Below are positions 12,281 to 53,575 of a DNA stretch of 64,000 nucleotides, in pieces (the first letter of the stretch is position 1; every line of letters starts with the position of its first letter). Origin of the DNA: Epithemia pelagica (taxonomy: Eukaryota > Protista > Bacillariophyta). The stretch covers positions 1,488,001 through 1,552,000 of the forward strand of contig OX337229.1 of the NCBI GenBank assembly GCA_946965045.2. The letters are read 5' to 3'. The notes below the pieces were generated by a model. That model did no database searches. It worked only from the letters and a program-made list of their open reading frames with translations, and was not told the DNA's origin. Made by a program: the position numbers and the translations under genes.

Positions 12281-13445
12281 GTCTGGAGCGGCCATATCCA
12301 TGGAGCCGGGTCTCGTCATCCTTTGGTCAAAAACTCCTGTTGTGTGTGATGCGTCGAAAAGAAGCGTCCACCGATGGATGGCCTTTTCTCAATGGCCATA
12401 CCACCGATGATCGATCTGATACCTCAGATCGCTAAAGTAGAGCCTAACATAAAAGACTACTAAGTAGGACGTCTGGAGCGGCCATATCCATGGAGCCGGG
12501 TCTCGTCATCCTTTGGTCAAAAACTCGTGTTGTGTGTGATGCATCGAAAAGAAGCGTCCATCGATGGATGGCCTTTTCTCAATGGCCATATCACCGATGA
12601 TCGATCTGATACCTCAGATCGCTAAAGTAGAGCCTAACATAAAAGACTACTAAGTAGGACGTCTGGAGCGGCCATATCCATGGAGCCGGGTCTCGTCATC
12701 CTTTGGTCAAAAACTCCTGTTGTGTGTGATGCGTCGAAAAGAAGCGTCCACCGATGGATGGCCTTTTCTCAATGGCCATACCACCGATGATCGATCTGAT
12801 ACCTCAGATCGCTAAAGTAGAGTCTAACATAAAAGACTGCTAAGTAGGACGTCTGGAGCGGCCATATCCATGGAGCCGGGTCTCGTCATCCTTTGGTCAA
12901 AAACTCGTGTTGTGTGTGATGCATCGAAAAGAAGCGTCCATCGATGGATGGCCTTTTCTCAATGGCCATATCACCGATGATCAATCTGATACCTCAGATC
13001 GCTAAAGTAGAGTCTAACATAAAAGACTACTAAGTAGGACGTCTGGAGCGGCCATATCCATGGAGCCGGGTCTCGTCATCCTTTGGTCAAAAACTCCTGT
13101 TGTGTGTGATGCGTCGAAAAGAAGCGTCCACCGATGGATGGCCTTTTCTCAATGGCCATACCACCGATGATCGATCTGATACCTCAGATCGCTAAAGTAG
13201 AGCCTAACATAAAAGACTGCTAAGTAGGACGTCTGGAGCGGCCATATCCATGGAGCCGGGTCTCGTCATCCTTTGGTCGAAAACTCCTGTTGTGTGTGAT
13301 GCGTCGAAAAGAAGCATCCATCGATGGATGGCCTTTTCTCAATGGCCATACCACTGATGATCAATCTGATACCTCAGATCGGTAAAGTAGAGCCTAACAT
13401 AAAAGACTACCAAGTAGGACGTCTGGAGCGGCCGTATTCATGGAG
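12281..13445 (-). repeat. Right arm tandem array, type A, 190-bp unit, ~6 copies
   Basis: catggag recurs at 12299, 12489, 12679, 12869, 13059, 13249 and 13439; reverse complement of the left A units. Confidence 0.95.
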
Positions 13446-14152
13446 CTGACTTCGACGAATGAGTAGGCTAATCTCATGTGGTCCGTGCCACGTCGAAAAA
13501 TCGACGCAATGGTGTGGAAGCTCGTTTGCATCCTATGCCTGGGGATAGCCTATATGGGTCAATTGCGTTTTTATTTACACTAAGGTCGATAACATATTTT
13601 AATTTCATGGCAATTGGTCAAGTATTGGTGGAGTAATCGCATGGTGAATGTACCGGCCAATGGGCAATCTAGCGGCCAAATCGCAAAAAAAAAAATGACC
13701 CTACAATGATGAGAGAGAACTCGATGACGATGGCAGATATGGAAAAAGTGCCCGGTGGGGACCTAAAGCATTGTATGAAGATGATTTCTATCATCCCATT
13801 TCTATGGAGGTGCTATATTGAGCTAGTAATCGTTAAAGACCACCATGGTCATTTGGCCGCTAAAATGCAGGGTCTGGCCGTATCACCCGTGAAGGCACTA
13901 GGTAGGTACCCTAGCTACCTAGGTAGAGGCTACAGGGCTCACTCTGTCCGTCCTCCGTCAGAGTCGCGCGCCTTCTCGGCGTGGCCGGCGATATCTAAAA
14001 GTGTCATCGTCTCTCTTCCGCCGCACGTCGTACAGCTGGTGCGCGTCGCTATCTTCAGCCTCGTGCGCGCCGCCAGAATCGCCTGAGTCTTCGGGCGCGA
14101 GGTGGCATTGTTGATACCATAAACCATAACACTGCAACACAACAAGTTGATA

Positions 14153-18249: not shown

Positions 18250-20449
18250 TTAAGTTCTCCAATTTCTTTTGTAATTTTCAAAGTACTTGCCCGCCCGGTC
18301 TAGAGGGTCTTCATCCATTATGTCGTCATCTTCCATACCTGTACTTTCCTCGTCCCACCCAAGTCGGGCAGAATTCTCTTCCATCTCGACGAGTCGATTA
18401 TAAAGTTTAAACCGCAAGAAATGGTTTTCCCGCTCCTTACGTTCGGCATCTCGTTGCCTTGCGTCCAATATATGCTTCTCTCCCATTTTCTGTAAGGCTA
18501 CGGATACTATGTCCTTGCAAGCCAGGTCATTCATCTCCCACACCTTCATTCCTTTCACATTCTTCTTGACGTTGAGGGTCTGTTTAACTTCCGCTGGTTC
18601 CTTCTGGCTGTCATTGGAAGGAGACTCTGTTGCCTCCGTATCACTGCTCTCTTCAGCGTCGTCCTCAATGCCTTGGTCATCGTCCACAACTTCATCAGCA
18701 TCTTCCATTATCAATTCCTCTTTTTGTGTTTCAGGAATCTCCTCCTCGTCGTCTTTTTGGGTGCCGTTCCGAATCACGTCGACATCTTCATTCTCTTCCT
18801 CTTGGCGCGACATCTCCATGGACTCATCAAATGCCGAGTCTCCAACAGGCACTGTATCCAGGGCTTCCTCCTGATTCATGGCGAACCTTGAAGCTTCGTT
18901 CTCGACGTCTACAACAGCCACCTCGTCGTCGCTGAAGTACGACATACCATGTGCTTCAGACCCACATTCGTCGTTGTATTCTTTCATCTCAGCTTCCAAA
19001 TCAATGACCGTGCTTTCCTCGCCATCCTTGGTATTGTCATCGTTGGATTCTGCGTCGCCATCATCGTCACTGTCATCCTCTGAGTTGGACTCGCTCCTTT
19101 CGTCCTTCTCTTCCGTGTCGTCCTTTTTCTTCCGGGACGGACGCTTCCTCAAACCCTCCATCATCTTGTTAACCTGGATCATGACGTATTCGTCTGTCGC
19201 ATCCGTTTCCACCTTGCCATTATCAATCCTGGTTTTTTTCTTGTGTACTTCCAGGGTCGTCGACTCGATAGACTGCCAAAACCAATTCTTGTCAACAGGC
19301 GTCTCTTTGTCTAGTGCAATATCGTGGCATCCGGCCAGGGTGAGAATCTCCATTACAAGGACGCGGTTCATTAGATTTGACGGCTTGGTGGTAGCCTTGT
19401 GTTGTTGGCCAGGATCAACAAGCACCTTCGTGTCCTTATTTTGCGTTGTATCATTCATCATTTCTTTTTCCCGTTCTGCCAGCTCATATTCCGCGTCAGA
19501 TCGAGTCCGTGTATAGAATTCGAGAAAGTGCTTAGAGCGCTGACAAGCTGTCAACATCTTAGACACTTCAACGAACGCCATCTCAGTAGCATTGTGACTC
19601 ATGCCCTTGAAAAAGGGCATGAGTCGCTCCATTATTTGGTCCAAGGCACTTTCCTTGTTTAGAACAGGACTCGGCATTTGCTTTTGACACTTTGTTCGGT
19701 TGAGGCGGATCTGCTGCAAGACGGTAATAGGAAGACGATAATAATACAACTCTATCAAGCGTAGCTGTGTATTGAAGGACACACGTTTCTTGGTAATGTA
19801 CCAATACGGAAGGTACTCCACGATGATAGATTCCATTATGATTGCGTCGCCTTGTTGTTCGGCCTCAAGGAAGGTAAGATACTTGCGCATGAGCACAAGG
19901 TAGTTGCACAAGAATCGCATTAACCAGTGTTTTGATTCTCTCACTTGTTGGTTCAGGTAGTTCACATATTCCTTTGAAATAAAGATGGCCAATTCGTTGC
20001 CATCACCAAAATGGAGGATTTCATCTACTTTGCTCAACGTTAAGACCTTGGCGACGTAGAAATCAAGCATCAACCTGTCGAGTTCCTCAAAAACAAGGAC
20101 GGCCAAGCGAAGGGCCAGACGGTATGTATGAGACACGTCATTGGCATCCAAACGTTTCCACTTGAGTCTCCATTGAAAGCATTGAAGAAATCCACCGTAG
20201 AATAATCTATAAATGACGTCTAGCATGTGAAAGCGCACATGCAAGTCGCCATTGATAGGGACTATCCGGTGCATTACTTGGGTGATGTTGAGCGCTTGAC
20301 GATAGACCTGTCGAAACGACAATGTCTTGGCATCCAGAATACCAAGAATGTCGTCCATGAATTGGAATATCCTGTCCAACGACAATCCATCGCCAACAAT
20401 AAAGAGCCATTTCTGATCCCATCCATCACGCGGTTCGTACATTGTAGTA
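18250..20449 (-). CDS. Academ-type transposase, C-terminal part (split by LTR insertion)
   Basis: Motifs IVGDGLSLDRI, GDLHVRFHML and LDQIMERL, plus an acidic tail. It joins the 5' part in frame (KWNHA-TTMYEPR) once the insertion and one TSD copy are removed. Confidence 0.8.
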
Positions 20450-20454
20450 GCATG

Positions 20455-21238
20455 TGTTACAATTCTTTCTGAATCGTAGGGACATCAATGCTCGTTAGAG
20501 CAGACAATCAGGTAGTCACCAACCGATACAAACCTCTCCACGGGTAAGAGAGGAAAGCAAGTCGTAGTCTATCAAAAGGATAGTCGGGACACAAAAGAGG
20601 ATGTGATAAATGGTGATATTGTTAGATTGTGAGCTTTAGGACTATGGTGTGTGTTTTGATGTGCAGGTCTGGCCAGGGTGCATGACTGATATATTCATGG
20701 CGCTGACAGGACTGGTCTGGTTGGAGTAGACATGGATATTGTGTATTGGAAGTATATGCACTTGTATATCATATACTAATGCCAACAGCTCTTGCTTTGT
20801 TGTGATATAGGTAGTTTTCTTGGCGTGTTGCCGTTTGCATTCTTCGATTTGTAGGAATAGAGATATGGTCTCGCGTGATCGTGATTCGTGCTTCGGTTAC
20901 TTAGGCCGTTGGGCTAAGTCGTGGAGATGCGCACTCGGATAGTAGTTGCACGCGCTTGAGAATATTGGGTGCGCACGTGTAGGGCCATAGTTAATTTCCG
21001 AGCGGTTGTTGATAATGCGCGCATTGCGAGCATGCCATGGCCGAAATTAAAGGTACGCGAGCATGTCGTCACTCTGTTCTCACTTTTCATGAAATGCGAA
21101 GGAATATAGGTCGATATAGCGCCAGCTAGGGAACATAGGACAAAGATGGGCGGCATAGATGGTGCTTCGAAGCCTCGGGACTTGGCTAACCGATGAGATG
21201 CCGGATCTAACCAATGGATAACGGTGAGAATCCTACTA
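20455..21238 (-). repeat. 3' LTR of element 1 (784 bp)
   Basis: Direct repeat of 31455-32238 with about 7 substitutions counted by eye; a purine tract GTGGGGAG precedes it on the minus strand. Confidence 0.92.
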
Positions 21239-40676: not shown

Positions 40677-41798
40677 ATGAACCTTTGGAAATCTTGCAAC
40701 ATCGCTTCAGGAGAAGAGACGAAAGAGGCTTCTGTTGAACGGCATCAATGCTGGCGTCGAGAAATTAATCAAGAATGCCCAACTTCGAACGTATGTACGC
40801 TGAGGACGAAAGACGTCATCTGTACAAGAAACAGTTCAGTCCACAAGCACCCGGGTAATCGTCGTTATACGGTTCTGATTCAAATGTATTACGAGGCTTA
40901 TCAGTCATCAACGTTGCGCGAAGACAAATCGCGAATCACTCGTCAAGTTATTCAAGCTGTCTGTGATTACGGTGGACGATTTGTAAAATACGACGAGAAT
41001 ACAGGAACGTATCAAGAAATTGACAGTGATGCTAAACGCGAAAAAGTATCGCATGCGCTCCGGACAGCTGTTGATCCTGCAAAAAGACAACGGCGACACA
41101 AACGGATCAACAAAAAGCTTCACTCCAAAGGCGACGTCCGCAACTGCCAGCAATCGATCACCGAAAACAACAACGACGTTTGCTCTAGTCTAAGCTTTCC
41201 CTTGTATGGAAAAGAAGAATGTAATCCTCTTGCGATGAGGAATCGTGTCATCACAGACGACAGCGCAAGGAGCATGGTCAGTTGTGATCGAGACGAAAGA
41301 TTGACTAGGGTTCAGGAAACATCACAAGAGAGAGATATGATCGTTGGTGTTCCATCACTCGCCATATGGTCTTCAGAATATCAGCAATCGGCATCAACTA
41401 TGACACAGGAAAACACACCATGTTTGTCGTCTGTCGACAACACACAGACAGTTCACAGAAAAGCAGCGCACCTAGAGGACAATCAGCACACTATAGGATG
41501 CGGATGTTGTATGGGCTTCGAGCCTGTCTCCTACTCAGAACTACTTGAACGGGAAAAGAGCAGACAAGAGATAAAAACTCATCAGCTGGAAGAACAAATA
41601 TTGATTCAAAAGCTATGCAGTGAGATTCAAGACCAAAGTACATCAATAAAAGGAAACCAATCTTCCGTGGTCGCACCGCCATCAACATTCAAGAATCCCT
41701 TTGAACCGACTCATATTTCGCCTTTCTCCAGGAGTACAATGCCAGAGGACGACCCGGAAGACATGCTGATGGCTTGGGCAAACGAGATTGTATTTTAA
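40677..41798 (+). CDS. DUF6824-type diatom protein (373 aa)
   Basis: DVIC...HPGNRRY..LI.......K..IT..VI..V...GGRF...REKVSHALR signature. Confidence 0.85.
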   Translation: MNLWKSCNIASGEETKEASVERHQCWRREINQECPTSNVCTLRTKDVICTRNSSVHKHPGNRRYTVLIQMYYEAYQSSTLREDKSRITRQVIQAVCDYGGRFVKYDENTGTYQEIDSDAKREKVSHALRTAVDPAKRQRRHKRINKKLHSKGDVRNCQQSITENNNDVCSSLSFPLYGKEECNPLAMRNRVITDDSARSMVSCDRDERLTRVQETSQERDMIVGVPSLAIWSSEYQQSASTMTQENTPCLSSVDNTQTVHRKAAHLEDNQHTIGCGCCMGFEPVSYSELLEREKSRQEIKTHQLEEQILIQKLCSEIQDQSTSIKGNQSSVVAPPSTFKNPFEPTHISPFSRSTMPEDDPEDMLMAWANEIVF

Positions 41799-43376
41799 AA
41801 TTAGGCATTCCGATTAAAACAAAGAAGGCACTATTTTTCCTTGAGTTTTTACCTTTGGCGAGGGTTACGAATAATGGTCTACGCATACCTTATTGACTGT
41901 ATTCGTTATTAGCTTTTGCGTGCCTTCCGTTGCTCACTACCAACGCTATGAATGCCTCTAGCTAGAGGGTACTAGCACTACTCTACCTACCTACGTAGCT
42001 TCGGGCAAGTCAAGCACACCAACCTCTAGCTAGGTACTCCTAGCTCCTAGAGTCCGAGCTCTACCTAGAAAGCAGTATCGTCCATCTCATCAGCTAGGAG
42101 TACTATATCTAGAGTACCTCCTCTCTAGTAGAGAGACTAGAGGATAGAGGTGCTTCGAGAGCTATGAGCATCGAGGTGCACTGTTTTCTCGACAGCCTCC
42201 TTGAGAGAGATCTCGCTGCCGTCCGTCTTCCGTGTCCATTGTCGAAAAGAAACATAAGGGAAGTCACAAGATCGATTTTCTTTTCAAGTAGCAGTATCTT
42301 CTATCCCCGTAATCGGTAATCCGTAGTGCCCTAGGTCAAAGGGTTGCATGGCAGATGGCACATTGTACAATGTCTATTATTTAATTCAGCATGGCGAAAT
42401 GGGACAAAAGACAACAAGAAGTAGTTTTAGGCTCTTGTCCTTCTTGCTTCCTCTTTCCACTTTCGACTTTCCATCTTTTCGATTATTGTATGGAAATTTG
42501 TCATCAGTCCGTACTCGTATTCCGTACCTTATTCCTTGTCAGTCTCATTTTTCGCAATGGATACTCGATACTCGATACTCGTATTCGAAATTCGTAATGC
42601 ATGCAAATAACATCATGAAACACTGGAAACACGTCATCAATCATCATACGTGATACTGATGCGTGATGCATGAGAAAGAGATGATGATGTATGATGTAAT
42701 GCACATGAGGCTTCTGCTTTCTCATTCCCATCTTTTCGATCAAACGCCAAGCTCACTTTACACAGTTCAATTTGACGATGTAGAATGCGTTCATGTGACT
42801 CTGTAGTCAAATCATTTATGGGCAAATGTAACAAGACACATGACATGTTACATGTAACATTGTAACATCATCTTCCAAGTGTATTGTGTGACCATTTGAC
42901 ATTTGAGATTTGAGATTTGAGGCTCCCTTTTTGTGAGTGCGACTGGTACGAGTATATGTACACCACAACATAAGTGAAATTATTGTAGAGAGAAAGAATT
43001 GTTGAACAGTCTGAGTGAGGAAGGAAGTTGGTAGGGTCGCTTTCTACTAGAATGCTGCCACTCTTTGGGGGAAGGCTATTGTACAAATAATTCGAAACCA
43101 ATAGTGCCTTTGCCGACAGGAATGGTGGAGCAGTTGGATTTAGAAACGATTAACCACACCCAGTTTTTTGGTCGCTTTCAGTCGCATAAGAACTGACCCC
43201 ATCTGCATTCCCACGCCTGTCAGCACCCCATGCTGCCGCTCCAGGCACGTGTCAAGACACGTGTATCAACTGTCCCCTCTTCCAACGGTCTCCCAAAGAA
43301 AATCACCTACTACCTTTGTACTTGCATGTTGCATGAGAGGGGCCAAAAAAACCCACTCTCACAGCCTTTGCTTCCT

Positions 43377-44440
43377 TTTCCAACACTCTCTCCTTCTACC
43401 CTTGATAACTTTCTACATGTAAGTCGGATTTCCAAATTGAATGGCTTGTTGGAAAGCCCTTTGCAAGACGGTTCTAACAATGCACCGTTTGGTTTGATTG
43501 ATTGGGTCCTTCAGAAGCGATTTGATTTTGGAATTTGGGGTCTTTTTGGTGGCTGTTCCAACACTCTCTCCTACTACCCTTGATAACTTTCTACATGTAA
43601 GTCGGATTTCCAAATTGAATGGCTTGTTGGAAAGCCCTTTGCAAGACGGTTCTAACAATGCCTCGTTTGGTTTGATTGATTGGGTCCTTCAGAAGCGATT
43701 TGATTTTGGAATTTGGGGTCTTTTTGGTGGCTGTTCCAACACTCTCTCCTACTACCCTTGATAACTTTTTACATGTAAGTCGGATTTCCAAATTGAATGG
43801 CTTGTTGGAAAGCCCTTTGCAAGACGGTTCTAACAATGCACCGTTTGGTTTGATTGATTGGGTCCTTCAGAAGCGATTTGATTTTGGAATTTGGGGTCTT
43901 TTTGGTGGCTGTTCCAACACTCTCTCCTACTACCCTTGATAACTTTCTACATGAAAGTCGGATTTCCAAATTGAATGGCTTGTTGGAAAGCCCTTTGCAA
44001 GACGGTTCTAACAATGCACCGTTTGGTTTGATTGATTGGGTCCTTCAGAAGCGATTTGATTTTGGAATTTGGGGTCTTTTTGGTGGCTGTTCCAACACTC
44101 TCTCCTACTACCCTTGATAACTTTCTACATGTAAGTCGGATTTCCAAATTGAATGGCTTGTTGGAAAGCCCTTTGCAAGACGGTTCTAACAATGCACCGT
44201 TTGGTTTGATTGATTGGGCCCTTCAGAAGCGATTTGATTTTGGAATTTGGGGTCTTTTTGGTGGCTGTTCCAACACTCTCTCCTACTACCCTTGATAACT
44301 TTCTACATGTAAGTCGGATTTCCAAATTGAATGGCTTGTTGGAAAGCCCTTTGCAAGACGGTTCTAACAATGCCTCGTTTGGTTTGATTGATTGGGCCCT
44401 TCAGAAGCGATTTGATTTTGGAATTTGGGGTCTTTTTGGT
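43377..44440 (+). repeat. Tandem array, 178-bp unit, ~6 near-identical copies
   Basis: caacactctctcc recurs at 43381, 43559, 43737, 43915, 44093 and 44271; the sixth unit breaks at ~44440. Confidence 0.97.
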
Positions 44441-44467
44441 TGTCTACATCAGGATTTGTCGTGGGTG

Positions 44468-45751
44468 ATGTCCAAGCAAGCCCTCAAGGGAGGTCGTTTA
44501 GAACCAGACCATAATGGTCAGGCTCTCACCGCCCAGTGCTTAGGCAGTACATCTTCAAATGTACATGCCAACAAAAGTACGGGGGGGCTTGCACGGAGAT
44601 TAACTCAGGATGAGATTCTGCAGAACATAGCTGAAGAACATACAAGCTTTGATGTTACTAATGCTTTTCATGTCTTCAAGTCCAACAAACCATGTTCTCA
44701 AAGGACACAAGTTGCTGCTTTGGTTGCCAAAGCATCTTCCATGCCAAGGTCTTCTGCACAACGATATCGCCGGAATAAGAAGAGACAAAAGCAGGAAGAC
44801 GCATTGAAAGAGATTACCGAAGCACCTGATTCTTTGAAGATTTCTTCTTCTGTTCTACACAAGTTCTGCCTAGTCTTCACAAATGACCCTACCGATGGTC
44901 CGCTGGAGCTATCAAAATGCACTCCATATGTCCCCCACCCTGTTTCCTTGTCAAGCTGGAAAGTAATTGGAGAGTCTGGTGACCAAGGAAGTATCTTTCG
45001 TCCAGATAAACAGAAACTTCCTGTGTTTCTCAAACCGCCACGTCAAATTATAACAAGTGATAATGTGACACAGAACCTACTTGATGTTCTTGAGAAGTTG
45101 GAGACAACGTGCAACCATCAATCACGTGGCAAGTCACGTTATGTCGGATGTGATGAACACAAGACAAACTACATCACTCTTGGTGTCCATGCAAATCGGG
45201 GAAGAAAAGGGCTGGTAGATTCAAAGTTTTCCAAGTTGAAAGCAAAGGAGAAACGGGTAATCTTACAATTCATCAAACAGCTTGAGACACAGCTGGAAAA
45301 ATGGATCGACTGGTCTTATTCTTTTGCCTTCGAGAACGCTGCAAGAAACGGTGAATTCAAGTTATGGTCCCACAAGGGCAAAAGTACACATTTCTTCTCC
45401 TCTGTTGCGTTCGGACGAAACGTTTTCCTTCAAGCCCATACAGACAACGACTTTGGTCTGTCCATTTCTGTTGTCATGCTTGTGGAACCAAGTAACAAAG
45501 ACAAGGATGAAGTTTTGGCTAAATTTGTCTTCCCAGAACATGGACAAGTTGTGGCGTTACGACACCTCGACATCATCATTTTCAATCCTCTTGAGTACCA
45601 TTGTGTCTCCAAGCGGGCAACCAAACATGACATCTTTTGTCTGACATGCTATTTGAAGACTGCAGTGGTGGGTAAGAACGACAACACAATTTCTATCACA
45701 GACAATGAAAAAGCAATTTTGGCAGCTGCCAAGAACAAAACTAGTCATTAA
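44468..45751 (+). CDS. TET/JBP-like 2OG-Fe(II) dioxygenase (427 aa)
   Basis: SSVAFGRN..LQAHTDND (HxD), FVFPEHGQVVALRHLDIIIFNPLEYHCVS (distal His) and CLTCYLK; first ATG 27 nt after the array. Confidence 0.7.
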   Translation: MSKQALKGGRLEPDHNGQALTAQCLGSTSSNVHANKSTGGLARRLTQDEILQNIAEEHTSFDVTNAFHVFKSNKPCSQRTQVAALVAKASSMPRSSAQRYRRNKKRQKQEDALKEITEAPDSLKISSSVLHKFCLVFTNDPTDGPLELSKCTPYVPHPVSLSSWKVIGESGDQGSIFRPDKQKLPVFLKPPRQIITSDNVTQNLLDVLEKLETTCNHQSRGKSRYVGCDEHKTNYITLGVHANRGRKGLVDSKFSKLKAKEKRVILQFIKQLETQLEKWIDWSYSFAFENAARNGEFKLWSHKGKSTHFFSSVAFGRNVFLQAHTDNDFGLSISVVMLVEPSNKDKDEVLAKFVFPEHGQVVALRHLDIIIFNPLEYHCVSKRATKHDIFCLTCYLKTAVVGKNDNTISITDNEKAILAAAKNKTSH

Positions 45752-45820
45752 AGTAAAACATAATATGTTGCATAAACAAACGCTCAATATTGTTTAGATC
45801 TGTTATGGGAGTTTTACAAA

Positions 45821-48800
45821 CTAGGTGAAAGATGTCAGACCTAATGTGGCACCACGGAAACGACGTTTATGCTGGGTTTGTTCAGCATTTGCTGAAACCC
45901 ATTCCTGACCTTGGTTGTGATGTCCCCGTTCTGCCATTTTCCGGCGTATGTCTCGACGTAGTTGGCGAAATGACTCAAGATGGGATAAAAGATTGTGATC
46001 AGAAGCGACATAGTTACCAGACCGGAAAAGATCCTGTAGTTCTGAAACCTCTTTGTGAATACATGAAATGAATTGTTGTGTTGTCATTTGCTCCCCAGCT
46101 TCTTCTTCAATTGCCTGCAGGAAAATTTCATTCTCCTCATTCTCCTGGGTGGAGAAATGCGCGTCGTACGTGCCTTGGCCATCTGTGTCATAGTCTTCTT
46201 TTTCTTCTGGAAACGAAGGAAATGCTGGCATTTGGGTTGTGTAAGCATTGTTTGTGATGTCATCATTTGTGACAAAACATTCTTGGGACAGATATCCAGG
46301 ATTAGGACATATCTCCCTTTCCCTTATTGTTGTTGTTGCTGCTGTTGCATTTGAGACAAGACTTCCTCCAAATGTATTGATAGCACGCAGTATTTGATCT
46401 TCTGTATAGTTGACACAACTACTTTTTGGATCAACGTGCAGATGTTTGAATTTGATGGGATTGTCTCCCGTGTTGTACGGGCCTTCTGTCCAGCCATCTA
46501 TATTTTGAAGGGGAAGGGGAAATTTAGGTCCAGATATGTCGTTGTCCAGCAAGTGCTGGATGCACTCATCAACATTGTTATCCCCATCACGGAGACCAAG
46601 GAAGACATGTTTCTTCCACCACACAATACTCACATCATGGTGGGTAAATCCTTTGTAGCTAGGATACTCGTGCATAAGCACAGCTGCTTGGTGAGCACAT
46701 GGTATCCCTCGTCGTTCAAAAGACATACAGGTGCACTCCAGGCGTCCCATTTTGTTCAGATGTACACATCGAGTGCGATGCCACACAGGAAGCAAATGTT
46801 TTTTTTCATTGTCGACAATAGAGGGGTCGCTTATAACAACGTGCCATTGCCATGGAGAAAAGGGGACAGGTGCACGACGGACACTATAGTTCTTCCCGAA
46901 ATTCCATGATTTTGTTGCCAGATCAAGACACAATTCTGTGACAAAACCGTTGACTGGAAGGTGGTTTGTCCAGGTGGCCGTTGCTTCTACACTCGAGGAC
47001 GCACGACGCATCTGTTCATCAATGGCCATGTCAGACTGGAGCTTGAGCATAGCTGCATTGAATGCAACAGTTCTGTTGGCCAACACTGGTGCAGAATGTT
47101 CCTTTAAGCCAAGATTTGTGCCTTCATGACTACTGTTTGTCGATTCTTCATAATAGCGGATTCCTTTACGATAATGGAAGCACAAGTGCCTGTCGTGAAC
47201 AAAGACATAGCCAATAAGAAAGTTATGGATAACTTTCCGGAGCTGGGGGGTCAAGAAAGTGCGAACAGGCCTGGAGTAAACAAAGGCAAGAAGAAGACAT
47301 TTTGAGATGTGGAGTTCCTGTTCACTTTCACAGTAGCGTGGATACATGAATGAGTAACACCATTTCTTTACAGTGGTTGCAAATTGCCGGTATGTGCGTT
47401 TGTATTCCCGTGGAATTGCTCCCTCAATGGAGCACTGCCTACTCCAACCCTTGAAAATGATATGCCAGCCACAACGGATTCTGATGCAGTGTGGCATGTA
47501 TCGTCGCATCGATTCTTCCAATTCTTCAATTTCATGGGAGTCTCCATCAGTTACTATGGCCTTGACCCGTGCTATCCATTGTGTTCCAAGAAGAGTCGGA
47601 AAAGCAATGCAGAAAACCCATCGAAATGTTGTTCTTCTCTCATTGGATAGAAACATTCGCATGATGACAAGATATTTTCCATAGGCCGTGCGCATTGACA
47701 CAGTCATTAAGGGGCGGTTTTCTCTATTTGTTCCTTTGGTGACATCAATCTTCAGTACATGCGGAAACAGTCGAAACATTCGCCGCTCCTTATTCGTGAT
47801 CCAAGCACAAGCAATGAACATATTCTGGTCAACATCAAGTTTCAGATTTTCCATTTCAGTAGTATATTCATGGAGGATCTCTTCACAAAAGTGAGTCAAG
47901 TCTGAAACACTGTGGTTCCCATCTTCGTCTTTGTTCTCATTGAAGATTAACCCTGACTGCCGTTCCATATGAGCATCGGTAACACTGTCTGGGCGCGCTC
48001 CCCAAATGCAGTAGCTTAAACTTTCGGCAGTACGAAGCCATTCAACTACGGCTTCTGCAGATGCATGTATTCCATCAAAGTGGTACATTCCTGTTGTGTC
48101 AGTTACACGAAAAGCATATCGCATTTGATCACGAGTAATGGTCAAATTGCCATTTGCGTGGAAGTAGTTGCGACCAGCCGCTGGTCCTGTAAATGCATTA
48201 CCAAGTTCACCCGCACGTTTGCGTTGTTGAGCAGTAAAGTTCCTAATGCGAAATGGAATGTCAGATGACATCTTCTTCATGTGGTTGCAGTGACATGCAT
48301 TCCCGGCGACTCTGGTGATATAGAAACCTTTGGAATTGGCAAAGACCGTGAAATGAAAAGAGCAAGTATGATCACGATGTAGGGCTCGGTTGGTGATGCG
48401 TTTACGCGCTTGTTTCCTACCCTCCGGTCCTCGACTATTAGCTCGTTGATCGTTGTGCAGAGAAATGCCACGGTATTGCTGAATGGAAGGTTCATCACTT
48501 GCTTTACGCTTTTGGTAGACTCTGTAACGTTCACATCGAAAGGTTCTTGAAAAAAAGGGAGGGGAACTTCCTTCAGGGAAGTGTTTACGGGAAGCAAGCG
48601 CAGAATTCTTGGTGGAGTTACCGTTGCTCACAAGAACAAAACCGGATGTTAAAGATTTTGTAACTAAATCTTGGTGAAGATTTGCCATTGAATTGCCTTC
48701 CTTTGAGAGTTCATCTGCAGATTGGAGAGGAGGGTATGTGCTACGATCAAAGTATGCGTACTTGCCCTTGATGCCATTCGCTGCTTGTAGTCGGCCAAAG

Positions 48801-48991
48801 AAGGCACAAATGTCCAGTTCCACAGTTGTGTCACTGTTGGCACAATTGTTGCCTACATGCATTTGGAATTGTAGTGGCGAGTGCCATTCTTTGTCCAATG
48901 ATGCAAAAAGATCATCCAGGTATTGTTGTGTTAGATCTTGGATAGGAACCAGGTTATCCTCAGATAGGGGCTGAGCGTCATTGTCCACCAT
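45821..48991 (-). CDS. MULE (Mutator-like) transposase with SWIM zinc finger (1056 aa from MVDNDAQ)
   Basis: N-terminal C/H finger (FRCERY..CSFHF..CHCNH); DDE residues KIDVTKGTN, VTDGD and SSHEGTN; RCGWH; SWIM CTC..RGIPCAH. The ORF is intact. Confidence 0.88.
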   Translation of the reverse strand: MVDNDAQPLSEDNLVPIQDLTQQYLDDLFASLDKEWHSPLQFQMHVGNNCANSDTTVELDICAFFGRLQAANGIKGKYAYFDRSTYPPLQSADELSKEGNSMANLHQDLVTKSLTSGFVLVSNGNSTKNSALASRKHFPEGSSPPFFSRTFRCERYRVYQKRKASDEPSIQQYRGISLHNDQRANSRGPEGRKQARKRITNRALHRDHTCSFHFTVFANSKGFYITRVAGNACHCNHMKKMSSDIPFRIRNFTAQQRKRAGELGNAFTGPAAGRNYFHANGNLTITRDQMRYAFRVTDTTGMYHFDGIHASAEAVVEWLRTAESLSYCIWGARPDSVTDAHMERQSGLIFNENKDEDGNHSVSDLTHFCEEILHEYTTEMENLKLDVDQNMFIACAWITNKERRMFRLFPHVLKIDVTKGTNRENRPLMTVSMRTAYGKYLVIMRMFLSNERRTTFRWVFCIAFPTLLGTQWIARVKAIVTDGDSHEIEELEESMRRYMPHCIRIRCGWHIIFKGWSRQCSIEGAIPREYKRTYRQFATTVKKWCYSFMYPRYCESEQELHISKCLLLAFVYSRPVRTFLTPQLRKVIHNFLIGYVFVHDRHLCFHYRKGIRYYEESTNSSHEGTNLGLKEHSAPVLANRTVAFNAAMLKLQSDMAIDEQMRRASSSVEATATWTNHLPVNGFVTELCLDLATKSWNFGKNYSVRRAPVPFSPWQWHVVISDPSIVDNEKKHLLPVWHRTRCVHLNKMGRLECTCMSFERRGIPCAHQAAVLMHEYPSYKGFTHHDVSIVWWKKHVFLGLRDGDNNVDECIQHLLDNDISGPKFPLPLQNIDGWTEGPYNTGDNPIKFKHLHVDPKSSCVNYTEDQILRAINTFGGSLVSNATAATTTIREREICPNPGYLSQECFVTNDDITNNAYTTQMPAFPSFPEEKEDYDTDGQGTYDAHFSTQENEENEIFLQAIEEEAGEQMTTQQFISCIHKEVSELQDLFRSGNYVASDHNLLSHLESFRQLRRDIRRKMAERGHHNQGQEWVSANAEQTQHKRRFRGATLGLTSFT

Positions 48992-49409
48992 GATAGGATA
49001 CAAACTATGTGACGGTTTTTGAACTGGAAATGGATTTGAATTTGTCCAGCGCGGGGTGGCCAATTTTATGGTCACGATGAAAGCGGGTTGTTTGTCTATA
49101 TATCCAATGCTCTTTGGAATACATAGGCGACTAGCCCTTGGCCGGGGGGCGTGCGTGATTGGAAGGGTACCCGGAGTTTGAAAAGGAAATGGGATTGAAA
49201 AACTGGGTGTCTTTAATCGGGAGTGGACTTGAGAGTTGGGCCACTGTTCGTAATAATACGAGTAATTAATAATATTATCTTTCTCCCTTGTTGAATCAAC
49301 AATGCCAAATCCGCTCCGCTTCTCCCTACGAATAAAACAAAAAAAGATTCTCATAAGTTTCCGCGAGTTCGTGGAGGACGCTGACGACTGGGCGACTGAC
49401 GACCTGTCC

Positions 49410-51967: not shown

Positions 51968-53575
51968 ATGACAATGCTAATGTTTCCTACTGCTGGTGGT
52001 GCTGCGGAGATAACAACAACAACGAAAGAAGCAAGCAGGGGCGAGACACCACTGTGCTATACTACTTTGCCGGAACCTATTACGATTGCAAGTCTGGTAG
52101 GCATCATGCCAAATGACCAAGACACAGGCGACGTATCCAAGAAGACTAAAACCAAATCCATTGACAACACTAAGACGACAGCATCTGTGCACAAAAGTGA
52201 CGGAGCTTCTCCAAGTGCGACTCCTGACAGCGTCATTGGCAGTAACAGCAACACGAACCAGACCCAAGCGACATCGAAGGCAGCAGTGGTGGACGTTCCC
52301 CAAACCCAAGATGTTCTTTGTGCAACAAGCAGTTCTGCCTACAGTCGCCATCCGGGCAATCGTCGCTACACTGTGCTGATTCAACTGTATCGCCATACGT
52401 ATCAGACCACGACACAACGAGATGAAAAGTCTCGTATTACTCGGCAAGTTATTCAAGCTGTCCAAGATTACGGGGGTCGATTTTTGAAGTACAATGTGGA
52501 AACGCAGTCCTTTGTCGAACTGGATGACCATGCCAAACGAGAAAAGGTGGGACACGCCCTTCGTATTGCCGTCGACCCCGCAAAACGACGGCGAAGACCC
52601 CGTGGGGAAGACGGTCTCCTAATGGGCAACGTTGGTGGTTCCGGAATGGCGACGATGGGGGTAATCAACGCACCCTTTCCACCCGACTTCGCCGTCTCTG
52701 GTGGGGAGGAAACGGGTCGTGGAGGAACAGGTAGGACAAGAACAGTCGACAAGGGCACGACCGCAAGGGACAAAAAAGTTCCTCCTTTATTCTCACCTCT
52801 AGCAAAGCAAGAGCAAGGTCGACCTCAAGATATGAACCACTATCAGTCTATGCGCGGCTCTTTATCGGCAGCGTCGGCTGCTGTTGCATCTACACCAGCA
52901 ACTGGGGGGACCGCAGCGGATACGACGATGACGGGACGAGGTCATCAACAACAAGGTACCAATACAACTTCAAGTGTCCCCTCCTATCATTCATTCTTGG
53001 AGGAGGATGCAGGCATGATGTTCCCCCAGCAACAACGACAAGAACGCATGCTACCATTGCTGTACGGTCCACCGGGGACCCGACAAAAAACTGGATACTC
53101 ACAAGACCATGAGCAAAACCGATCGTGGACTCGATCAGACCAACATGTTCAACACGAATCATTGACTGATGCTCAGTCCCATGCTTCTTGGTCTTCCCGC
53201 GAGGAAAACCAAATGTACGCCAATTTTGCTCGTCGGTTGGGTGATGATTCTTCGTTTTCTTTTGTTTCTACTTCTCAGTTTTTGCCTCAGAAAACATCAT
53301 CCGCCATGGCGACGCCAACAACAAACTCAATTCGATTTTCGGAGCACTCAACCTCCAATATTCAAGCTAGAACTTCAACGCCTACTCCCAAATCACCACC
53401 ATTTCTTCATCAGCATCACTCGTTAACCTTGGAAATGCCGGATGACATGCCGGACGAGAGGAGGGAACGAAATAATAATGATGACGAGAACCAGAAACAT
53501 GAAAGCAATGAGGATGAGGATGAGGATGATGACACTCTTTGGGATATGGCCAAGGAAATATCTGACGAATTTTGA
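51968..53575 (+). CDS. DUF6824-type diatom protein (535 aa), paralog of 40677..41798
   Basis: DVLC...HPGNRRYTVLIQ...KSRITRQVIQAV.DYGGRF...REKVGHALR. Confidence 0.87.
   Translation: MTMLMFPTAGGAAEITTTTKEASRGETPLCYTTLPEPITIASLVGIMPNDQDTGDVSKKTKTKSIDNTKTTASVHKSDGASPSATPDSVIGSNSNTNQTQATSKAAVVDVPQTQDVLCATSSSAYSRHPGNRRYTVLIQLYRHTYQTTTQRDEKSRITRQVIQAVQDYGGRFLKYNVETQSFVELDDHAKREKVGHALRIAVDPAKRRRRPRGEDGLLMGNVGGSGMATMGVINAPFPPDFAVSGGEETGRGGTGRTRTVDKGTTARDKKVPPLFSPLAKQEQGRPQDMNHYQSMRGSLSAASAAVASTPATGGTAADTTMTGRGHQQQGTNTTSSVPSYHSFLEEDAGMMFPQQQRQERMLPLLYGPPGTRQKTGYSQDHEQNRSWTRSDQHVQHESLTDAQSHASWSSREENQMYANFARRLGDDSSFSFVSTSQFLPQKTSSAMATPTTNSIRFSEHSTSNIQARTSTPTPKSPPFLHQHHSLTLEMPDDMPDERRERNNNDDENQKHESNEDEDEDDDTLWDMAKEISDEF

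Follow-up and report, generated by a model that had tools for sequence, protein, structure and literature searches.

A Mutator-like transposon of the diatom Epithemia pelagica carrying a predicted TET/JBP-like dioxygenase gene and a 178-bp tandem array: a possible anti-silencing module

Genes of the TET/JBP class were reportedly recognized in fungal KDZ elements by Iyer et al. in 2014. Such genes ride many DNA-transposon superfamilies in fungi (Kojima 2025, PMC12730594). The Plavaka elements of red algae encode PAG3, which combines a ParB-like domain with a putative 2-oxoglutarate (2OG) oxygenase, beside tandem arrays; Mutator elements of Chondrus contain homologues of Plavaka accessory genes, PAG2 and PAG3 are also found with Zisupton, and the authors of that study propose self-targeted modification (bioRxiv 10.1101/2025.02.11.637652). 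Transposon-borne TET/JBP genes have so far been documented in fungi, and the red-algal 2OG accessory genes temper the phrase ‘only in fungi’. Here, we analysed a mobile element of the diatom Epithemia pelagica within a window of 64,000 nucleotides (GenBank assembly GCA_946965045.2, contig OX337229.1, positions 1,488,001 to 1,552,000 of the forward strand; coordinates are counted from the first letter of this stretch), in which the transposase gene of a Mutator-like element (MULE) converges with the gene of a predicted TET/JBP-like dioxygenase, and the latter is preceded by a tandem array of 178-bp units.

The first-pass annotation of this DNA knew of no earlier description of the combination, but precedents exist in the TET-carrying transposons of fungi (PMC12730594) and the PAG3-carrying Plavaka elements of red algae (bioRxiv 10.1101/2025.02.11.637652). 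A full-text literature search for diatom, TET/JBP and transposon returned nothing describing the present element. As an overall reading, we consider it reasonably probable that this is a Mutator-like transposon with a selected TET/JBP-class enzyme that counters the element's own silencing, the array acting as the expression module of the enzyme.

Limits, copies and mobility of the element

The whole mobile element spans about 6.08 kb (43147–49224, no strand), as delimited by blastn comparison with two further copies, L001 and L002, and by the branching of contigs at 49224. A stretch of 21 kb of the window shows 100% identity to contig ctg1306l of the European Nucleotide Archive assembly ERZ21939226, which places the loci taken from this assembly in the genome of the window. 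L001 and L002 are 96.3% and 97.8% identical, respectively, to the window at 43147/43149–49224/49227, and their flanks are unrelated. Both open reading frames (ORFs) are intact in the window copy alone among the three, L001 and L002 carrying frameshifts. The common core of the copies begins at 43149, and the 7 nt preceding it vary from copy to copy. The first-pass annotation had found no terminal inverted repeats (TIRs), but these lie outside the interval 43377–48991 to which it referred: an inverted-repeat search detected a 22-nt left TIR (43147–43168, + strand) that is 91% complementary to 49198–49219. This right TIR is followed by 5 nt common to all copies (together 49198–49224, − strand), as seen by copy comparison. 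The position of the 22-nt TIR coincides exactly with the borders at which the three copies cease to match. Related elements have TIRs of 34 nt (L001), 36 nt (97%; L004) and 53 nt (98%; L005), and the TIRs of all these elements are short for a MULE.

Between these termini, the tandem array (43378–44440, + strand) comprises 6.0 units of 178 bp with 98% matches and 0 indels according to Tandem Repeats Finder. It lies 230 bp from the left TIR and ends 27 nt upstream of the ATG at 44468, with which the dioxygenase gene begins, an uninterrupted ORF of 427 aa (44468–45751, + strand). The transposase gene (45821–48991, − strand; 1056 aa) converges on it, the ORF coordinates leaving a 69-bp spacer between the two stop codons (45752–45820, no strand). 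In the transposase, Pfam detected PF10551 (MULE; 34.6 bits, cut-off 27.6), PF21056 (ZSWIM1-3 RNaseH-like; 45.4 bits, cut-off 27.2) and the SWIM zinc finger PF04434 (23.1 bits, above the cut-off). On each of these points, namely, six near-identical repeats ending 27 nt before the ATG, and an intact MULE-SWIM transposase converging with an intact dioxygenase at a distance of 69 bp, the first-pass annotation proved accurate. The reading frame of the transposase is open over 45821–49354; the stretch beyond 49224 is outside the element, and 48991 is the first ATG inside it.

Contigs of three public runs (X1, X2 and X3; DNA assemblies) were mapped onto 44200–49290. At 49224, some of these contigs branched into the flank of L002 and into a further, fourth flank, and at least 4 insertion sites of the subfamily were recognized. 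In addition, X1, X2 and X3 each contained a contig in which CAGGAATGGTGGAGCAGTTGGATTT is followed by GACGT and then by the right flank from 49224. The 25-mer CAGGAATGGTGGAGCAGTTGGATTT is the left host flank of the element (43117–43141, + strand) and is unique in the window, indicating that an element-free allele of the same locus exists, in which the two host flanks are fused. The insertion is therefore polymorphic, and probably heterozygous. Both structure and mobility are well supported, and we regard the element with high confidence as a Mutator-like DNA transposon that is autonomous and has moved recently.

The contigs of X1 and X3 also depart from the window at 49278 (loose end TAGAGCTGGGTCAAGCG...), a position 54 bp beyond the right end of the element, which marks a second place close to the insertion at which alleles or strains differ in structure. 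Two paralogous DUF6824 genes, both on the + strand, enclose the element (40677–41798 and 51968–53575; E 1.6e-23 and 1e-19).

The dioxygenase as transposon cargo and its predicted fold

In codon alignments of the copies, the ratio of non-synonymous to synonymous differences (pN/pS) was 0.27 and 0.13 in the TET gene; for the MULE gene, it was 0.29 and 0.51. These low ratios indicate that both genes were under purifying selection while the family spread. Three further lineages were identified in the same genome, L003, L004 and L005, with TET proteins 46, 43 and 39% identical to the window protein, and in each of them the TET gene is convergent with a MULE transposase. TIRs were found around the L004 and L005 elements, and the order TIR, 178/179-bp array, TET, convergent MULE, TIR is retained in four deep lineages of this one genome. 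The five MULE-linked TET genes of the genome formed one clade in a maximum-likelihood tree (Shimodaira–Hasegawa approximate likelihood-ratio test, SH-aLRT, 100).

The dioxygenase gene lies inside the element termini alongside the transposase and is kept across copies. The suggestion of the first-pass annotation that a MULE carries its own dioxygenase is upheld by the TIR-bounded structure, the multiple copies in unrelated flanks, the empty allele, the purifying selection and the four lineages. It could still be argued that the dioxygenase is a host gene that came to lie beside MULEs by chance or by segmental duplication, without being functional cargo, as no target site duplications (TSDs) were detected and Pack-MULEs often capture functionless host fragments (PMC6446971). 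However, the gene is enclosed by TIRs in at least four elements with differing flanks, the empty allele lacks it along with the rest of the element, comparison of the copies shows purifying selection on it, its pairing with a MULE persists down to 39% TET identity, and no copy remote from mobile-element genes was seen in the genome. This host-gene reading is therefore extremely improbable. The host-gene or segmental-duplication reading was rejected on the grounds of TIR enclosure, the empty allele, selection and the lasting MULE pairing.

Two of the related loci showed additional features. In L004 (10038–10511), a second repeat (180 bp × 2.6) is located in the N-terminal coding part of the TET-like protein P0004 and contains a repeated LKSGRLAPCLPGKKGLTALP... 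segment. In L003 (11285–20603), the MULE is interrupted and its N-terminal part is doubled (12337–13710 and 19209–20582); the doubled parts flank an 820-aa helicase-type ORF (Pfam Herpes_ori_bp and, weakly, AAA_30), an arrangement that suggests nested insertions or rearrangement.

A profile search of 1.84 billion representatives with the dioxygenase yielded 1,560 clusters (50% identity) at E <= 0.001, including 434 at E <= 1e-30. An AlphaFold2 model was built on 17 relatives (predicted local distance difference test, pLDDT, 76.5; predicted template modelling score, pTM, 0.80). The best 23 PDB matches of this model in Foldseek were CcTet, CMD1, TET2 and NgTET1, and the top matches of VIA-align agreed; the structure comparison then dropped to about 12 for AlkB/FTO, spanning only 170–200 residues. 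Matches among Swiss-Prot models were JBP1/JBP2 and NgTet1, those among AlphaFold clusters were a fungal ‘Tet-like 2OG-Fe(II) oxygenase’ and a KDZ-transposase-associated protein, and the language-model neighbours of the enzyme bear Tet_JBP and 2OG-FeII_Oxy_6. The modelled fold is a double-stranded beta-helix with TET/JBP-specific additions, nearer to TET/JBP enzymes than to other 2OG oxygenases.

The HxD..H motif reported in the first-pass annotation corresponds to the iron triad H324-T-D326 plus H378, which is conserved among relatives: none of the three residues varies in the 17 sequences, and in the set of 91, H378 does not vary either, while conservation of H324 and D326 is at least 90%. 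A Lys, K397, located 19 residues past H378 in the next strand, is likewise invariant, and R383 is conserved in most sequences. The identity of the diatom enzyme to human TET2, Coprinopsis CcTet, Chlamydomonas CMD1 and Naegleria NgTET1 is 10–13%. We use the label TET/JBP-like because of the fold and the iron triad; on these two grounds the original assignment holds, but by the Pfam Tet_JBP model, which gives no match, it does not. Based on the structural model, membership of the enzyme in the TET/JBP-like class appears highly probable.

The array, relatives in other elements and the anti-silencing proposal

Arrays are present directly before the TET start codon in L001 (179 bp × 6.7), L002 (178 bp × 2), L003 (179 bp × 6.8), L004 (178 bp × 6.5) and L005 (179 bp × 2). 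Across lineages, the units are distant homologues, with 52–60% identity in phase (z 2.4–7 versus shuffles). The window units contain GTAAGT, followed after 55 nt by TTCTAAC and at +96 by CAG, while the features conserved among the units of the lineages are GTAAGT, CAAGAC..TTCTAA(C) 55 nt on, a run rich in pyrimidines that closes with CAG at +80 to +97, and the 9-mer ATAACTTTC immediately 5' of GTAAGT. We take GTAAGT, TTCTAAC and the pyrimidine-rich CAG to be the signals of a short spliceosomal intron. In the last array unit, the putative intron of the 5' untranslated region (5'-UTR) would extend over 44309–44404 (+ strand), with GTAAGT at 44309, TTCTAAC at 44362 and the CAG ending at 44404, and the GTAAGT of the last unit is retained in every lineage. 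The putative exon segments of roughly 82 nt contain no ATG once spliced, and the putative introns contain 1–2 ATGs. The array unit gave no match in Rfam, and its RNA fold was unremarkable (z +0.8). These features suggest that the units are repeated copies of the leader exon and 5'-UTR intron of the gene, perhaps together with its promoter. That the array belongs to the module is supported, at the level of sequence, by its conserved place and by the period of 178–179 bp common to the lineages.

The 9-mer ATAACTTTC also recurs inside the transposase gene as a palindromic pair, GAAAGTTAT nn ATAACTTTC, at 47218–47237, and ATAACTTTC-type matches number 7 in the window versus 0.47 expected.

Relatives of the enzyme beyond this genome were examined in 80 metagenome loci. 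A Plavaka transposase lies immediately downstream and convergent in about 20 loci, as well as in L009–L014 and, weakly, in L006; a MULE lies on the strand of the TET gene in 2 loci (L026 and L035); a Helitron Rep/helicase is located upstream of the TET-like gene in 7 loci; and a DEAD-helicase ORF of 1,200–1,330 aa is the partner in L007, L008 and L096. On the tree, the partner switches at least four times, L026 and L035 being nested among Plavaka-linked genes. Arrays with a period of at least 60 bp were detected within 1 kb upstream of TET at 24 of 48 loci and downstream at 11 of 55 (Fisher p = 0.0017), and such arrays occupy 4.3% of all bases in the loci of the relatives. Since upstream arrays are also found with Plavaka and Helitron partners, the array travels with the enzyme gene and not with a given transposase.

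This association also bears on a different interpretation of the array, namely, as subterminal transposase-binding sites needed for transposition and unrelated to the dioxygenase. Subterminal repeats are common in DNA transposons, the array of the window is only 230 bp from the left TIR, and the palindromic pair of the unit motif at 47218–47237 fits such a role. However, the array is one-sided and always abuts the TET start codon, the splice-like signals occur at fixed offsets in its units, and the TET relatives beside Plavaka or Helitron also tend to have an upstream array (24/48 versus 11/55). We therefore regard a function as transposase-binding sites as improbable. A wider proposal, which we put forward only tentatively and consider doubtful, is that the array and the TET-like dioxygenase form a portable anti-silencing cassette of aquatic protist transposons, swapped among Mutator, Plavaka, Helitron and helicase-type elements, with the enzyme either brought to its own array or produced from repeated leader/intron units by a route that evades silencing, and the carrier kept unmethylated. 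If true, this cassette would be the first enzymatic, sequence-targeted transposon counter-defence outside fungi and plants.

Several of the relatives' loci showed arrangements of their own. In L008 (1–15984), L007 (4194–14569) and L096 (501–2272), the TET-like proteins P0014, P0016 and P0018 are encoded convergent with a DEAD + Helicase_C ORF. The L096 contig, on which the TET-like gene converges on the DEAD-helicase ORF, is only 2.3 kb in length, and in L008 the TET gene, a 77-aa ORF and the helicase recur head to tail with a spacing of about 5.77 kb. This TET/helicase unit may represent either an array of tandemly repeated genes or a mobile element of a new kind, and the pairing is reminiscent of the helicase–dioxygenase fusion of JBP2. 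In L009 (2926–7489), the gene of a 911-aa Plavaka transposase is convergent with that of a 602-aa TET-like protein, which has a fungal-type Zn(2)Cys(6) cluster at its N-terminus (PF00172, E 6e-5); L009–L014 are near-identical contigs from six metagenome assemblies with the same TET/Plavaka arrangement. The TET-like gene is located downstream of a Helitron Rep/PIF1-helicase ORF in L016 (2622–10084), L060, L068, L070, L091, L074 and L089, and in L074 and L089 this protein of 2,000–2,300 aa additionally has a GIY-YIG nuclease domain. Finally, L028, L032, L038, L039 and L041 share a conserved block of >15 kb, in which the TET-like gene lies among ORFs of about 1,400, 513, 388 and 1,407 aa; Pfam gave no match for these four ORFs, and the block may be a large uncharacterized element.

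To our knowledge, DNMT5-dependent CpG methylation silences young transposons in diatoms, and no demethylase has been described in this group. The observed/expected ratio of CpG was 0.64 for the element (43149–49224), 0.51 for the array, 0.56 for TET and 0.69 for MULE, compared with 0.94–1.13 for the two flanking host genes and 0.91 for the whole window. The element also showed an excess of TpG+CpA (1.33). For the 233-bp right end, which precedes the transposase gene, the CpG ratio was 1.02, based on small counts. Depletion of CpG accompanied by an excess of TpG/CpA is, as far as base composition can tell, the signature of long-term CpG methylation. In Phaeodactylum, 5-methylcytosine (5mC) is confined to transposable elements (PMC12344493), and loss of DNMT5a depletes methylation and raises the expression of young transposable elements (PMC9998398). 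Taken together, the methylation signature and the effect of DNMT5a loss make it plausible that the element encodes a nuclear 5mC oxidase as a counter-measure.

We propose the following mechanism. The enzyme, which has a basic RRNKKRQK stretch, would enter the nucleus and oxidize 5mC, or perhaps thymine, in the DNA of the element itself. This oxidation would offset the CpG-methylation silencing of young diatom transposons, and would keep the transposase promoter usable. The array would be part of the enzyme's expression module and would supply repeated copies of promoter, leader and intron, because each unit resembles an ATG-free leader exon followed by a short intron; an additional role as a docking or target site of the enzyme is less likely. 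With respect to the anti-silencing step itself, through base oxidation on the element's own DNA, we consider the case evenly balanced.

A number of observations weigh against this reading. The first-pass annotation had looked to copies in which array, dioxygenase and MULE co-occur with shared ends and TSDs; the co-occurrence and the shared ends were found, but inspection of the flanks of five elements revealed no TSD of 8–11 bp. The empty allele carries GACGT, the occupied allele carries the element and about 13 junction nt, and the empty allele departs from a clean join by 5 nt. The junction is ambiguous because the host flank has a GTTGGA-type periodicity of 12–13 bp, and either imprecise insertion or an excision footprint may explain it; ‘MULE-Diatoms’ are tabulated with ‘No TSD’ (Dupeyron et al. 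2019, RepBase group; PMC6446971). With regard to the enzyme, the Pfam search of the 427-aa protein returned no family even at E = 10, and the gathering scores of PF12851 (Tet_JBP) and PF20515 (2OG-FeII_Oxy_6) were not reached. The relatives, searched as sets of 17 and 91, gave no more than weak matches below threshold, namely, among the 91, five to Tet_JBP (best E 0.0023) and one to PF20515 (E 0.015), and family-profile searches of PDB sequences with the alignments of 17 and 91 relatives detected no relevant solved structure. In known TET/JBP enzymes, an Arg after the distal His binds the carboxylate of 2-oxoglutarate; the solved enzymes have this Arg, whereas the diatom enzyme has K397, at a position assigned from spacing, not superposition. 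As for the array, GTAAGT is missing in one of the six window units and in about half of the L001 units, and the arrays of non-MULE relatives are wholly without it. Finally, the CpG depletion shows a lineage that was apparently methylated despite its enzyme, and the enzyme would therefore give less than full protection.

Some of these points favour the alternative that the cargo enzyme is real but is not a 5mC eraser, acting instead on another DNA mark or on an RNA or protein substrate, with a benefit other than demethylation. With respect to other marks, the enzyme might convert thymine to 5-hydroxymethyluracil, as does JBP, or 5mC to glyceryl-5mC, as does CMD1, or might remove N6-methyladenine (6mA), as reported for CcTet. 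JBP1/2, CMD1 and the CcTet-6mA complex are among the structural neighbours, with scores near those of the 5mC oxidases; K397 stands in place of the usual Arg; the CpG-depleted element has not escaped methylation; and thymine is also a substrate of NgTET (PMC12344493). We consider this alternative unlikely. Demethylation of the element by its own enzyme remains the reading that we prefer.

Comparison with known systems

Active DNA demethylation in diatoms, or other base modification, could be approached experimentally through an element that is active and polymorphic and retains its enzyme gene intact. Diatoms are an ecologically dominant group, and the element offers a handle on the contribution of the conserved 178-bp array as well.

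Within diatoms, the element resembles the MULE that disrupts UMPS in Phaeodactylum tricornutum in having a MULE+SWIM transposase and a second ORF (bioRxiv 10.1101/2023.01.02.522487). The UMPS element is active, 3.7 kb in length, and has TIRs of about 200 bp, TSDs of 9 bp and an E3-ligase-like cargo (bioRxiv 10.1101/2023.01.02.522487), in contrast to the 22-nt TIRs, the lack of a visible TSD and the TET-like cargo of the present element. VANDAL21/Hiun in Arabidopsis is also a Mutator-family element with an accessory gene thought to undo the element's own methylation silencing, and internal tandem-repeat motifs are linked to this function. However, VANC of VANDAL is a non-enzymatic DNA-binding protein unrelated to 2OG oxygenases, whereas the diatom cargo, although its gene is likewise linked to an array, is a predicted enzyme and no homologue of VANC.

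The red-algal PAG3 system shares with the diatom element an accessory gene of the 2OG-oxygenase type located next to tandem arrays in DNA transposons, and in both systems the accessory genes switch elements. The oxygenase assignment of PAG3 is weak (HHpred E 0.016 to 2OPW), and PAG3 has a ParB-like domain. Compared by described features, the predicted fold of the diatom enzyme matches TET/JBP in particular, and the protein showed no ParB-like domain.

The TET-carrying transposons of fungi likewise have a gene of the TET/JBP class inside a DNA transposon and beside the transposase, this gene moves between superfamilies, and its proposed role is escape from methylation silencing. The fungal elements are thought to erase their own silencing methylation, and the present finding, if true, would place the same strategy in a diatom Mutator element. 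Unlike the fungal elements (PMC12730594), the element described here has a diatom host and a MuDR/MULE carrier, which is absent from the published superfamilies. The diatom enzyme clade, moreover, lies outside Pfam Tet_JBP and 2OG-FeII_Oxy_6, and the gene has a conserved upstream array. What is new in this element is therefore its host group, the diatoms; its carrier superfamily, Mutator; an enzyme clade missed by domain databases; and a conserved array.

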